Positions 53,066-61,584 are shown, counted from the first letter of the whole stretch. The stretch: DNA of 62,922 bases, filler included, from Octopus bimaculoides (GCF_001194135.2; 6 parts of 6 records of this genome joined end to end with filler, not necessarily neighbours in it), one strand, 5' to 3'. A program made the numbers and translations. Notes: generated from the sequence alone by a model not told the origin.

Positions 53066-53931
53066 GGTTTCTCTCCAGTATGAATATGTTTGTGCCTAGT
53101 TAAGTCACTACTTCCAGAGAATGATTTACCACAGATGTCACAGTGATATGGCTTTTCTCCTGTATGAATACGTTTGTGGATAGTTAAATGACTAGTTTCT
53201 GAGAATGATTTGCCACAGATATTGCAATGATATGGCTTCTCTCCTGTGTGAATACGTTTGTGTTTAGTTAGGTGATCAATTCGGGTAAATGATTTACTGC
53301 AGGTATCACAGTGATATGGCTTCTCACCTGTATGAATACGTTTGTGTACTGTTAAGTGACCAGTTTCTGAGAATGATGTACCACAGATATCACACTGATA
53401 TGGTTTCTCTCCTGTATGAATACGTTTATGTTTAGTTAAGACACTGCTTCCAGAGAATGATTTATCACAGATATCACAGTGATATGGCTTCTCTCCTGTA
53501 TGAATATGTTTGTGTACATTTAAGAGATCATTTCGAAAGAATGATTTTCCACAAATATCACAATGATATGGTTTCTCTCCTGTATGAATTCGTACATGTT
53601 TAGTTAAGACGCTATTTGTAGAGAATGACTTACCACAGATATCACAGTGATATGGCTTCTCTCCTGTATGAGTACGTTTGTGTTTAGTTAAGTCACTACT
53701 TCTAGAGAATAATTTACCACAGATAACACACTGATATGGTTTTTCTCCAGTGTGAATACGTTTGTGTATAGTTAATTGATCATTTCGAGAGAATGATTTA
53801 CCACAGATATCACAGTGATATGGTTTCTCTTCTGTATGAAGATGTTTGTGAGAAGTTAGGTTACTTTTTTGAGAGAACAGTTTACCACAGTTATCACAGT
53901 GATATGATAATTTTCTTAACTCTTTTGACAT
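53066..53931 (-). CDS. Tandem C2H2 zinc-finger protein (left paralog), 10 complete fingers visible, C-terminus in the gap 52579-53065
   Basis: Open frame of CxxC-x12-HxxxH units with TGEKPY linkers; no KRAB/BTB/SET-type domain seen; true start uncertain. Confidence 0.92.
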
Positions 53932-54616
53932 CTTTCCAAGGAATCAGAAAACAAAAAAACAATCCTTTAACATTCTCACAGTATNNNNNNNNNNNNNNNN
54001 NNNNNNNNNNNNNNNNNNNNNNNNNNNNNNNNNNNNNNNNNNNNNNNNNNNNNNNNNNNNNNNNNNNNNNNNNNNNNNNNNNNNNNNNNNNNNNNNNNNN
54101 NNNNNNNNNNNNNNNNNNNNNNNNNNNNNNNNNNNNNNNNNNNNNNNNNNNNNNNNNNNNNNNNNNNNNNNNNNNNNNNNAGAGGATACAGAAAAGCATT
54201 TTACATTATTTAACATTATACATATTCGTATACCACAGCTTCATTTTCATGTTGTGTAACATTATCAATGCTAAACTACAGAATGGTGAACAATAATATT
54301 TTTCTCCTTTCAGAAACATATTTTCTTATTCTTGTTTGGTCCTAGACCAGCCATGATTGAGCAAATCTATGATCAGATGTATTTCATTCTTGTCTTTCTT
54401 TCTAGTATTGCATATTCAAGACTTCATCAGCCAAATAGTCTTCAGTTATCAAGACTGAAAGGTGCAAAGAGAATGGAAATTGGCTGTTGTTTCTAGCAGA
54501 TGTGGCACCCTCATTGGCTTGTTGTTTAACTCCAGGTAATCCCATTCTAAGCACACCCATGATGATAGGCAGCTTGCTTTTTGAAGTTGCTATGAATTTT
54601 TTATCACATCAAACAA
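53066..54616. repeat. Outer left arm of the inverted duplication; pairs with 59814-61520
   Basis: Non-coding 54211-54616 matches the reverse complement of 59814-60218 with about 3 differences seen; the ZNF CDS also matches. Confidence 0.92.
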
Positions 54617-54724
54617 GGCTGTTTATGGAAGACCAGTAGTCGCCCATGCATACCAGCCTCCTCTCTCCACGCCACCGATGCTATCCAATTTTGGCATAAG
54701 GCCAGCAATTTTGGTGTTCAGGTT

Positions 54725-54948
54725 GGCGGACGTCGAACTTAAGAAGCATCAAGTTGGAATTACTCCGTTTTGATGGGGACCTGTCAGATTTTTTTCACGG
54801 TGCCCTTGGAAAAGCTCTCGGGGGGAAAAAAATTGCGGAAAATGATGGTTTCGTAATTTTACGCATTTTTTTTTTCTTTTTGCTATTAACTCCCCGTCAA
54901 AATAGAAAAAATCAAACTTGTTGGCGCTTCATAAGTCTGACTTCCGAC
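54725..54948. mobile_element. MITE with ~55-bp imperfect TIRs nested in a minus-strand family D SINE; homologous copy at 58074-58311
   Basis: ggcggacgtcgaacttaagaagcatcaagttgg...ttttgatgggga versus tccccgtcaaaa...aacttgttggcgcttcataagtctgacttccgac; host SINE resumes at gagggggtaag. Confidence 0.65.
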
Positions 54949-55032
54949 GAGGGGGTAAGTTGTTTATTTAGACCTCCAGTGATCAACTGGTATTTATCTT
55001 AATTGATCCCAAGAGGATAAAGCTGACTTCAA

Positions 55033-58311: not shown

Positions 58312-58465
58312 GAGGGGGTAAGTCTTCCAGTGCTCAACTCGCATTTATCTTAATTGATCCAAAAAGGATAAAGCTGACTTCAATTGAAATGCCAAGCATT
58401 TTGCTTGGCATGCTAACAATTCTGCCCATCGCCACCTTATGATAAATAAGCTTTATAACACAAAC

Positions 58466-58689
58466 CAGTGGTTCTCAACCATTTCTCTTTTACCTATGGT
58501 TCTCTTTGATTCCTGTTTTATTCAGGTGGATCCCCATAGCCATTCAATGTTTTAAAAAATCATATTTTTATAATTACATATTAGGAATCGGATAAGAAAG
58601 AAAGTTAAAAATAATTTGTGTATTGTGGAAGTATAATCAATTTATTGCTCATAAACTTTATCAATGAAATCTTATGTTAAGAACTACTC
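58466..58689. mobile_element. Possible hAT-type MITE
   Basis: cagtggttctcaacc start and degenerate gttaagaactactc end; TSD weak (5/8). Confidence 0.4.
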
Positions 58690-59813
58690 AGGTAAACCAA
58701 CTGTAATAACTATTTAAGGAAAAAGCAACAAAACAAAATTTCTCTGTAATGGTAACCAGTAATATTCTATGGCTGGTAGGATTGGAAGGTCTTCGTTAAA
58801 GTTTGTGATGTATATTGTAAAATTAATAACATTCCGAAAGGGAAAACAGTTATGATTTATGAAACTTAATTATAAAGCTTAATTCACCATCAAACTAATC
58901 AGAATCTGAGATTCTTATTCTTTCCCTCTTTTCATTTAAGTAAACAACTTCTTTAATTACTACAATCAGATTTATTTTGCATGTCTGTTCTTTGTGATAT
59001 GAAAACATAGCCTGAGAATTTCATCTGCCTGGTGTCCTTCTTTATTGAAGACATATTTAATTACTGTGTAACACGATTTTTGTCCTTGGATAGTAACAGG
59101 TTATTTCCTATTTACTTACCCCTAGAAAGTATGAAAAATGGCTAAAAATATCTTTCAAACTTTGGTTTAAACCCCAAAGAGTTCCTCTCTCAACACATAG
59201 CTATGATGCTCCCCCCTATTACTCCTGCTCATTATCAGAGGTGCACATACTGTCAGCCACTAAGGGATATGCTCAAGGGGTTAAGGTCAAGCAACTGACA
59301 TTATCAGATCTGTGGTATTGAGCAAAATATTTGCTGTAATGATATTTCTGCTTCAGTAACACGGCACTGAATCTGTCTGAAATGTAATGGAAAAAATAGG
59401 TCAGTTTCAAAACATTGATATCCATATGACAAAAGCAAAGTTTAGAAGGGGACGGTAGTGATTTCCTTTGATTTCTAGATGAAAGCAAATAAAAAGTAAC
59501 ACTGACCAAAGACAAAAAGAAAAATTTTGTTACACAGTGTTATTCATTTAACATCTATAGCAGATGTTAGGAATGACCATTAATGGCTGGCACTTTTTAC
59601 AAATTTCTGATACTAGATGCTTGCCATCAGCTGTTCTTATCACCTTTCAGATGGTGTACAATTTCAGCAAGGCAAGAAAGGTTTTTTTTAAACATTTAAC
59701 AGTTGTAATGGAAAACAAGTCACTTTTCATCAATTCAGCCATCATTATTCACTGAAGTGAATTTATATAACATTTTATTAATGTTGTTTGTCGTTATTCA
59801 TTAATATTTCTTT

Positions 59814-61520
59814 TTGTTTGATGTGATAAAAAATTCATAGCAACCTCAAAAAGCAAACTGCCTATCATCATGGGTGTGCTTAGAATGGGATTACCTGGAG
59901 TTAAACAACAAGCCAATGAGGGTGCCACATCTGCTAGAAACAACAGCCAATTTCCATTCTCTTTGCACCTTTCAGTCTTGATAACTGAAGACTATTTGGC
60001 TGATGAAGTCTTGAATATGCAATACTAGAAAGAAAGACATGAATGAAATACATCTGATCATAGATTTGCTCAATCATGGCTGGTCTAGGACCAAACAAGA
60101 ATAAGAAAATATGTTTCTGAAAGGAGAAAAATATTATTGTTCACCATTCTGTAGTTTAGCATTGATAATGTTACACAACATGAAAATGAAGCTGTGGTAT
60201 ACGAATATGTATAATGTTNNNNNNNNNNNNNNNNNNNNNNNNNNNNNNNNNNNNNNNNNNNNNNNNNNNNNNNNNNNNNNNNNNNNNNNNNNNNNNNNNN
60301 NNNNNNNNNNNNNNNNNNNNNNNNNNNNNNNNNNNNNNNNNNNNNNNNNNNNNNNNNNNNNNNNNNNNNNNNNNNNNNNNNNNNNNNNNNNNNNNNNNNN
60401 NNNNNNNNNNNNNNNNNNNNNNNNNNNNNNNNNNNNNNNNNNNNNNNNNNNNNNNNNNNNNNNNNNNNNNNNNNNNNNNNNNNNNNNNNNNNNNNNNNNN
60501 NNNNNNNNNNNNNNNNNNNNNNNNNNNNNNNNNNNNNNNNNNNNNNNNNNNNNNNNNNNNNNNNNNNNNNNNNNNNNNNNNNNNNNNNNNNNNNNNNNNN
60601 NNNNNNNNNNNNNNNNNNNNNNNNNNNNNNNNNNNNNNNNNNNNNNNNNNNNNNNNNNNNNAAATAATCAAATATTGTGATGAGAATACTGTGAGAATGT
60701 TAAAGAATTGTTTTTTTGTTTTCTGATTCCTTGGAAAGATGTCAAAAGAGTTAAGAAAATTATCATATCACTGTGATAACTGTGGCAAACTGTTCTCTCA
60801 AAAAAGTAACCTAACTTCTCACAAACATCTTCATACAGAAGAGAAACCATATCACTGTGATATCTGTGGTAAATCATTCTCTCGAAATGATCAATTAACT
60901 ATACACAAACGTATTCACACTGGAGAAAAACCATATCAGTGTGTTATCTGTGGTAAATTATTCTCTAGAAGTAGTGACTTAACTAAACACAAACGTACTC
61001 ATACAGGAGAGAAGCCATATCACTGTGATATCTGTGGTAAGTCGTTCTCTACAAATAGCATCTTAACTAAACATGTACGTATTCATACAGGAGAGAAGCC
61101 ATATCACTGTGATATTTGTGGGAAATCATTCTTTCGAAATGATCTCTTGAATTTACACAAACATATTCATACAGGAGAGAAGCCATATCACTGTGACATC
61201 TGTGATAAATCATTCTCTGGAAACAATGTTTTAACTAAACATAAACGTATTCATACAGGAGAGAAACCATATCAGTGTGATATCTGTGGTACATCGTTCT
61301 CAGAAACTGGTAATTTAACTAAACACAAACGTATTCACACAGGAGAGAAGCCATATCATTGCAATATCTGTGGCAAATCATTCTCAGAAACTAGTCATTT
61401 AACTATCCACAAACGTATTCATACAGGAGAAAAGCCATATCACTGTGACATCTGTGGTAAATCATTCTCTGGAAGTAGTGACTTAACTAGGCACAAACAT
61501 ATTCATACTGGAGAGAAACC
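59814..61520. repeat. Outer right arm of the inverted duplication
   Basis: Begins ttgtttgatgtgataa, the reverse complement of 54601-54616. Confidence 0.92.
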
Positions 61521-61584
61521 ATATCACTGTGAATTCTGTGGTAAGTCATTCTCCACAAGTAGCGTCTTAACTATTCACAAACGC
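60739..61584 (+). CDS. Tandem C2H2 zinc-finger protein (right paralog), 9 complete fingers plus one partial, truncated by the scaffold end
   Basis: Open frame with TGEKPY linkers; same N-terminus [12 protein letters not shown] as the left paralog. Confidence 0.92.

Follow-up and report, generated by a model that had tools for sequence, protein, structure and literature searches.

The 62,922-nucleotide (nt) window analysed here, a stretch of Octopus bimaculoides DNA (GCF_001194135.2) in which six parts of six records are joined end to end with filler, contains at positions 53,066 to 61,584 a pair of closely similar C2H2 zinc-finger (ZNF) genes, which we term copies A and B. The two copies are a mosaic: their differences were inherited as one block and not gathered site by site, because 15 of the 16 substitutions fall within 271 nt (permutation P ~1e-5), this tract ends at a hybrid junction between two fingers, and the 201 nt beyond the junction are identical. 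The explanation that we consider probable on balance is that a palindromic ZNF pair became mosaic through out-of-register recombination or gene conversion. A pair differing in a recombinant block is an ordinary route to a changed DNA target, and is not evidence for positive selection.

A mosaic pair with a hybrid finger

The two inverted open reading frames (ORFs), which a preliminary description of this stretch had located correctly, are:

53066..53931, minus strand: ZNF copy A, partial coding sequence, ATG at 53931-53929, 288 codons, 10 C2H2 fingers
60739..61584, plus strand: ZNF copy B, partial coding sequence, ATG at 60739, 282 codons, nine fingers and most of a 10th

These stand head-to-head and point away from each other, with 6.8 kb between them. 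Copy A is open from its ATG to the contig end at 53066, its 3' end being lost in the gap at 52579-53065; the nine codons after this gap are non-finger sequence. Copy B is open from its ATG to the edge of the piece at 61584, where the ORF is cut. Aligned without gaps, the copies show 69 mismatches in 897 nt; once a single 84-nt gap is placed (A 53269-53352, missing in B), 16 mismatches in 780 nt remain. The preliminary description overlooked both this insertion/deletion (indel) and the extra finger, A8, held by copy A. The features defined by the alignment and by the sites informative between A7 and A8 are:

53269..53352, minus strand: 84 nt private to copy A, a one-finger indel comprising the tail of finger 7 and the head of finger 8 (alignment)
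53233-53316, minus strand: finger A8, the extra whole finger of copy A (alignment)
61270..61353, plus strand: hybrid finger 7 of copy B, with head from A7 and tail from A8 (informative sites)
53356..53626, minus strand: divergent tract of copy A, fingers 4-7, with 15 of the 16 substitutions (alignment)
61044..61314, plus strand: divergent tract of copy B (alignment)

Finger 7 of copy B is of the A7 type at 13 of 13 informative sites and then of the A8 type at 5 of 5, with the switch inside a TAAC; the B-type finger 7/8 junction reads GGTAATTTAACTAAACAC. Three bases of this finger are unlike both A7 and A8, and all of them lie within the A7-derived head. The V/K difference at position +6 of finger 7 in the preliminary description is an artefact of the same structure: the K is A8's own +6 residue, present in B through the hybrid finger. 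Near the switch the longest exact match between A7 and A8 is 15 nt, which is too short for a false join at this point in a de Bruijn assembly.

The 16 substitutions comprise 11 synonymous changes and five replacements. The tract is 5.5% diverged, and its synonymous divergence (dS) is 0.20 as against ~0.01 outside, the latter value coming from one synonymous change; the silent divergence is thus ~20 times that of the flanks. The last difference in the tract lies 3-5 nt short of the 7/8 switch, past which the next 201 nt carry no difference. An identity of 99-100% holds for fingers 1-3 and for the last two or three fingers, as it does for nearly all of the palindrome arms in which the genes lie. 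Ten codons differ synonymously, which agrees with the number of such changes reported earlier; they are not spread over the scaffold as had been thought, since fingers 4-7 contain nine of the ten (P = 0.004). With 13 transitions to 3 transversions and both reading frames intact, the substitutions are real evolved variants and not assembly noise.

In the history that we regard as most likely, diverged family members exchanged a single tract, by recombination or gene conversion, and this was resolved out of register by one 84-nt repeat; the helix differences and the altered finger number would then have arisen together. The diverged sequence may have come from the two old arms, elsewhere homogenised arm-to-arm, or from a third paralog. 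Each of the diverged sequences would have evolved under purifying selection on the scaffold with its helix positions nearly free, which would leave replacements on the helices only. Intragenic conversion was also considered as a source of the tract and was rejected, the off-register identity between fingers being ~80% as against 94.5% in register.

Substitutions on helix and scaffold, and predicted recognition

The five replacements between the copies are all on recognition helices:

V108I: finger 4, helix position +3
V139L: finger 5, helix position +6
S162N: finger 6, helix position +1
S163N: finger 6, helix position +2
H192N: finger 7, helix position +3

These are the V/I, V/L, SS/NN and H/N differences of the preliminary description, every one of which was found again. 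None of the Cys, His, Phe, Leu or linker residues compared between A and B differ, in agreement with its statement that the metal ligands, the core and the linkers are unchanged. All five replaced codons fall within the 54 helix codons among 260, a confinement beyond chance (P = 3.9e-4 under a uniform null), and the ratio of replacement to synonymous changes is 5/2 on the helix versus 0/9 on the scaffold (Fisher's test, P = 0.005). The ratio of replacement to synonymous rates (dN/dS, omega) by partition is as follows:

All codons: omega 0.107, 5 replacement and 11 synonymous changes
Scaffold: omega 0, 0 replacement and 9 synonymous
Helix, all six positions: omega 0.65, 5 replacement and 2 synonymous
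Helix within the tract: omega 0.69, 5 replacement and 2 synonymous
Positions -1, +2, +3 and +6: omega 0.47, 4 replacement and 2 synonymous

The overall omega and that of the scaffold depart from neutrality (P = 3e-5 and P = 4e-7, respectively), and the scaffold is under strong purifying selection. The helix count of five replacements to two synonymous changes is indistinguishable from neutrality, at the low power of seven changes. dN/dS greater than 1, the sign of diversifying selection at contact residues, is not observed at the helix positions. Of the earlier proposal that specificity is diversifying under a purified scaffold, the part concerning the scaffold is borne out by the 0/9 count, and the part concerning diversifying selection is not, the helix omega being 0.65.

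As a benchmark for the helix enrichment we used the internally duplicated fingers of an annotated 462-aa ZNF of O. bimaculoides, which show seven helix and 10 scaffold replacements, with a per-site dN 2.7 times higher on the helix. Helix enrichment is thus general in this ZNF family and is usually not exclusive. The 403-aa ZNF genes at two comparison loci, one of O. bimaculoides (L004) and one of O. vulgaris (L005), were tried as benchmark orthologs and discarded, as they are not orthologs.

It could be proposed that the residues in contact with DNA in fingers 4-7 were replaced independently, under positive selection, after a recent duplication, the scaffold remaining fixed. The placement of all five replacements at +1, +2, +3 or +6, with none in the scaffold, is what this would predict, and the change from His to Asn at +3 is one that is expected to alter specificity. 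We regard this account as quite improbable: the helix omega lies below 1; selection on residues does not explain the clustering of synonymous changes in the tract, nor its dS of 0.20 against ~0.01 outside; the tract stops at a recombination junction, with no difference in the next 201 nt; and V to I and V to L are conservative.

In canonical recognition by C2H2 fingers, a finger reads a triplet, its 3' base through position -1, its middle base through +3 and its 5' base through +6, and position +2 contacts the triplet next to it. Taken in finger order, the contact sets of the two copies are:

Copy A: QSNS, RDQI, RSDK, TSVK, RDLV, GSVK, EGHV, RDHK, ESHI, GSDR
Copy B: QSNS, RDQI, RSDK, TSIK, RDLL, GNVK, EGNK, ESHI, GSDR, TSVI

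The proteins are predicted to bind DNA sequence-specifically, and copies A and B would read different targets. The large effects expected from the contact sets are the loss or gain of a 3-bp subsite (RDHK) and, in finger 7, the changes from His to Asn at +3 and from Val to Lys at +6, the former being a predicted change in preference from G to A under the canonical code. The V to I and V to L changes would have a minor effect.

The palindromic setting and the number of loci

In the scaffold, copies A and B lie at the outer ends of an imperfect palindrome of 8.5 kb. Its components are:

54212..54616: upstream arm segment, left, 99.3% complementary to 59814-60218 (405 nt)
59814..60218: upstream arm segment, right, the complement of the left segment
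55074..55879: inner palindrome arm, left, in which 55202-55458 and 55623-55878 match the right arm at 100%
57132..57783: inner palindrome arm, right, broken by a 10-N gap at 57388-57397
56865..57131: palindrome-centre spacer, 267 nt, on the same contig as 256 nt of each arm
56188..56865: redundant 100% copy of 55202-55879, 678 nt, a contig overlap artefact
57784..58001: insertion resembling a miniature inverted-repeat transposable element (MITE), right arm only, with 67-nt terminal inverted repeats (96%)
54679..55031: element X, left, ~355 nt
58028..58384: element X, right, ~355 nt
58385..59813: 1.4 kb private to the right arm, where the left arm holds 62 unrelated nt (54617-54678)

The piece from 47888 to 61584 has runs of N at 52579-53065, 53985-54180, 55880-56187, 57388-57397 and 60219-60661. 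Four of these gaps lie within 53066-61584, and neither ORF is interrupted by any of them. The gap at 53985-54180 begins 53 nt upstream of the ATG of copy A and that at 60219-60661 ends 77 nt upstream of the ATG of copy B, that is, at matching places; of the sequence flanking the two, 31 nt are extra in A on one side and 24 nt are extra in B on the other, with no overlap. For the outer arms, the linkage comes solely from scaffolding across gaps. At the centre, the spacer and both arm ends lie within one contig, which supports a real inverted repeat there. The sequenced inner stretches of the inner arms, of 257 and 256 nt, match at 100%; the left arm has 164 nt between its matching stretches where the right arm has its 10-N gap, so that this gap stands for ~164 nt, and the outer 128 nt are ~2-3% diverged. 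The gap at 55880-56187 is false, because identical 678-nt sequences (100%), in direct orientation, stand on either side of it.

The MITE-like insertion is flanked by a 7-nt target duplication (GGAAGTT/GGAATTT) and has a clean empty site at ~55073/55074 in the left arm; a relative of 81-85% identity is found in O. vulgaris at L005:9889-9959 (OX597841.1). The copies of element X share the same junction in both arms and are flipped relative to the arm axis, with a Jukes-Cantor (JC) distance of 0.10 and six gap events; the flip may stem from a local inversion or from independent insertions. In 52 kb of other Octopus DNA no further copy of element X, of the spacer or of the arms is present, and on that ground they are not common repeats.

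The divergence between the arms is patchy: 0%, 0.7%, 2-3%, JC 0.10 in element X and dS 0.20 in the tract, all measured between the two arms only. This pattern fits gene conversion, and on that comparison also fits a recent duplication with ectopic conversion. The 10% divergence of element X and the tract dS of 0.20 are similar in size, which fits, and does not prove, an old duplication followed by homogenisation of its collinear parts. The MITE-like insertion with its empty site and the 1.4 kb present in one arm argue for separate histories of the arms. Palindromes on primate sex chromosomes have gene-bearing arms that are homogenised by arm-to-arm gene conversion. The structure in the window is like these in its inverted arms, short unique spacer, identity of mostly 99-100% and gene copy in each arm; unlike them, its arms are of ~4 kb and are broken by a flipped element, by insertions of transposable elements (TEs) and by a diverged coding block, and it is known from a draft scaffold only. 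We consider it unlikely that the pair is an old head-to-head palindrome in which conversion homogenises the promoter, the leader and most of the fingers, while the four-finger block and the difference in finger number are kept by selection for two specificities. If true, such a selected island of divergence would give the locus an inherent means of maintaining two 'readers' that share one regulatory architecture.

That copies A and B are two real loci appears likely. In support of this are the palindrome centre within one contig, the several structural differences between the arms, and a divergence well above the reported heterozygosity of octopuses, which is lower than 1.03% (PMC13218726) or, in O. 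vulgaris, 1.1% (PMC6472339). The chromosome-scale assembly of O. bimaculoides is apparently a Hi-C scaffolding of the earlier shotgun assembly (PMC9068888), and for that reason is probably not independent evidence. The copies might alternatively be two haplotypes, that is, alleles of a single ZNF gene, with the scaffolder having folded back around a short real inverted repeat; the differences in finger number and in the helices would then be an allelic polymorphism, still derived from recombination with a paralog. This is a doubtful reading that nevertheless carries weight: there is a gap at every block boundary; a 678-nt false duplication at 100% is proven; the two arm contigs, one of them reversed, are collinear at both ends; both ZNF contigs stop within 64 nt of the same point of the array; and the 0.7% divergence of the 405-nt segment would suit octopus heterozygosity (1.1% in O. 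vulgaris; PMC6472339). The flipped element X with its 10% divergence and six indels, the MITE-like insertion, the 1.4-kb segment and the 84-nt coding indel, all within 8 kb, are a lot for alleles at a heterozygosity below 1.03% (PMC13218726). Further, the centre has arm, spacer and arm in one contig, and the scaffold has no alternative right-hand flank.

We hold it very unlikely that the copies are assembly chimeras, in which more than two near-identical paralogs exist, a short-read assembly joined the tract of one paralog to the flanks of a different one, and neither copy is real. The flanks of the tract are near-identical over at least 200-300 nt, which exceeds short reads, so the assembly does not fix the phase of tract and flank; in addition, the contig of copy A measures only 919 nt. 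However, both frames are intact, two tract variants with shared flanks would yield the same two sequences however they were joined, and the novel hybrid junction would need reads of its own.

Several points weigh against the explanation of the pair as a palindromic mosaic made by out-of-register exchange. The scaffold is poor: 9 kb of it contain five gaps, two of which enclose the short contig of copy A. A proven false duplication adjoins a gap, and scaffolding is the basis for the inverted layout and even for the presence of two loci. In the 405-nt segment the arms diverge by 0.7%, a value in the range of octopus heterozygosity (PMC6472339, PMC13218726). As the comparison covers copies A and B only, the donor of the block may be an arm or a third paralog, and the finger may have been gained or lost. 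The substitutions total 16, hence the error on omega is wide, and the DNA binding and the target differences come from the recognition code by inference.

Protein build, relatives and neighbouring repeats

The motif C-X2-C-X12-H-X3-H occurs 10 times in copy A, and nine times with one further partial occurrence in copy B; the Phe and Leu(+4) of the finger are invariant across both. The Pfam zf-C2H2 model (PF00096) scores 183 bits in A and 180 bits in B against a gathering cut-off of 25.2, with 10 stretches in each. Tandem Repeats Finder (TRF) detects an 84-nt period in ~10 copies with a 78-80% match between units, corresponding to a 28-residue period with H-TGEKP-Y linkers; the linker is TGEKP throughout, except for TEEKP in the first. 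Among the fingers within this gene, helix positions -1, +1, +3 and +6 are the most variable. A Pfam scan of both ORFs returned C2H2-type families only, with no KRAB (PF01352), SCAN, BTB or SET domain, and the nine ORFs between the two genes, scanned for an effector domain or coding exon, gave no Pfam match. The earlier remark that no effector domain is visible is correct within the ORFs and goes too far upstream of them, where an assembly gap 53-77 nt before each ATG could hide an exon. The gene product is predicted to be an all-finger Krueppel-type C2H2 protein, in which 9 residues of leader are followed by at least 10-11 fingers and no effector domain can be recognised.

Both copies have an in-frame TGA 15 nt before the ATG, and a T-rich run followed by AG directly in front of the ATG (53932-53946 and 60724-60738). 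The ATG is probably either the true start or the opening codon of an exon, and the T-rich run with AG is a candidate 3' splice site; a 5' exon may sit within or past the upstream assembly gaps.

We searched 5.8 billion proteins with copy B and with the block of fingers 4-8 as queries, the lengths listed being apparently ~0.57-1.75 times that of the query. Within those ranges there is no near-identical protein or fragment, the best identity being 62-63%, to other Octopus ZNFs; on this basis the gene is unannotated. The exact 47-nt leader pattern had 0 matches in JGI metagenome contigs. The DNA identity to three ZNF genes of the O. bimaculoides CM046629.1 locus (L004) is 74-79%. The annotated 462-aa ZNF used above as a benchmark lies there at L004:28982-30370 (minus strand) and consists of an 8-residue leader and 16 fingers, with no further domain. 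As this relative is built alike, the effector-less build is typical of the family and not a truncation artefact.

The 462-aa ZNF has an internal block duplication, in which fingers 2-5 match fingers 12-15 at 89-99% DNA identity, finger 6 matches finger 10 and finger 7 matches finger 11; here several fingers have been duplicated within one and the same octopus ZNF gene. In O. vulgaris, OX597841.1 carries at L005:3588-4799 (minus strand) a 403-aa ZNF with 13 fingers of a median pairwise DNA identity of 97.6%, most of them with the helix PQRNNLTTH, a minisatellite-like array homogenised in the style of PRDM9, in contrast to the ~80% identity among the fingers of the gene in the window.

The ZNF pair is an ordinary, new and unannotated member of the known octopus C2H2 expansion. 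A C2H2 zinc-finger expansion in coleoid cephalopods was reportedly described by Albertin et al. in 2015. Its lineage-specific character and possible link to transposons are treated in later work (PMC9068888, Albertin et al. 2022; PMC12513265, Holzinger et al. 2025; PMC10547256). The pair shares with this expansion its O. bimaculoides origin, Krueppel-type fingers, TGEKP linkers and short-leader, all-finger, single-ORF build; unlike the known members, it is in no annotated protein set searched, and has two ~98% copies together that differ in finger number.

The pair resembles PRDM9 in that out-of-register recombination alters finger number and that variation is concentrated on helix positions. 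The likeness to PRDM9 arrays drawn in the preliminary description nevertheless fails: no PR/SET domain is matched, and the fingers, only ~80% alike at the DNA level (78-80% within one gene), are not a minisatellite. KRAB is a vertebrate domain, and duplicates of KRAB-ZNF genes also gain or lose whole fingers. For recent KRAB-ZNF duplicates of tetrapods, helix-restricted divergence is established (Emerson and Thomas 2009 and Nowick et al. 2011, as they are cited in PMC10547256). Copies A and B are alike in differing at DNA-contacting helix residues while the Cys/His, core and linker residues stay fixed, and unlike in that the ORFs have no KRAB, omega is 0.65 and a single recombinant block holds the differences. 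Wells et al. 2023 (PMC10547256) describe the FiNZ-ZNFs of cyprinid fish and further non-KRAB ZNF expansions with links to transposons; they also made motif predictions for octopus ZNFs, which they set against TE consensus sequences. With the FiNZ-ZNFs the octopus genes have in common a large lineage-specific expansion of tandem fingers in a TE-rich genome; unlike them, the gene in the window has no conserved N-terminal associated domain that could be seen, and is known from sequence alone.

If both copies are real loci, they would illustrate, neatly and on a small scale, how new DNA-binding specificities come about in the octopus C2H2 expansion. If the out-of-register account is true, the route would be recombination that swaps a helix block and the finger number in one step, and not slow point substitution. 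The case is relevant to a question raised in earlier work, namely whether cephalopod ZNFs track transposons (PMC12513265, PMC10547256). No new principle is involved, the same processes being documented for vertebrate KRAB-ZNFs. It is also a warning: in a draft assembly, helix-only replacements should be taken for positive selection only once indels, mosaicism and false duplications have been ruled out.

The remaining feature of this part of the window is:

47888..52578: repeat-rich flank downstream of copy A, with families resembling short interspersed elements (SINE-like) and the tail of a long interspersed element (LINE)

About half of this flank is covered by interspersed repeats, and between the genes the MITE is the only shared repeat; the dense mobile DNA of the preliminary description is confirmed downstream of copy A. 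The interspersed repeats match O. bimaculoides CM046629.1 dozens of times, at up to 98-100%, and the O. vulgaris locus at only 70-85%, which identifies the piece as O. bimaculoides. A young SINE-like family is present at 47888-48005, 51195-51290 and 51375-51490, with copies of up to 98-100% identity in CM046629.1 (L004) and no comparable copy in the 21.7-kb O. vulgaris locus, a distribution that suggests recent, species-specific activity. In the region 48625-50950 a ~300-nt SINE-like repeat that ends in AT/TG microsatellites occurs at least seven times, with copies in both orientations and pairwise identities of 66-84%. Sub-threshold Rfam 'miRNA' matches at 48625-50950 and 51234-51436 were rejected as TA/TG microsatellites and not RNA genes, and a tRNA scan found no tRNA. 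At ~48100-48400 (plus strand) there is a frameshifted ORF2 tail of a non-LTR retrotransposon (LINE), …LGWFGHV…RKRWENI.EWTGL…SSVVPQQSARLQD, whose only named database relative is an O. bimaculoides protein with 69% identity.

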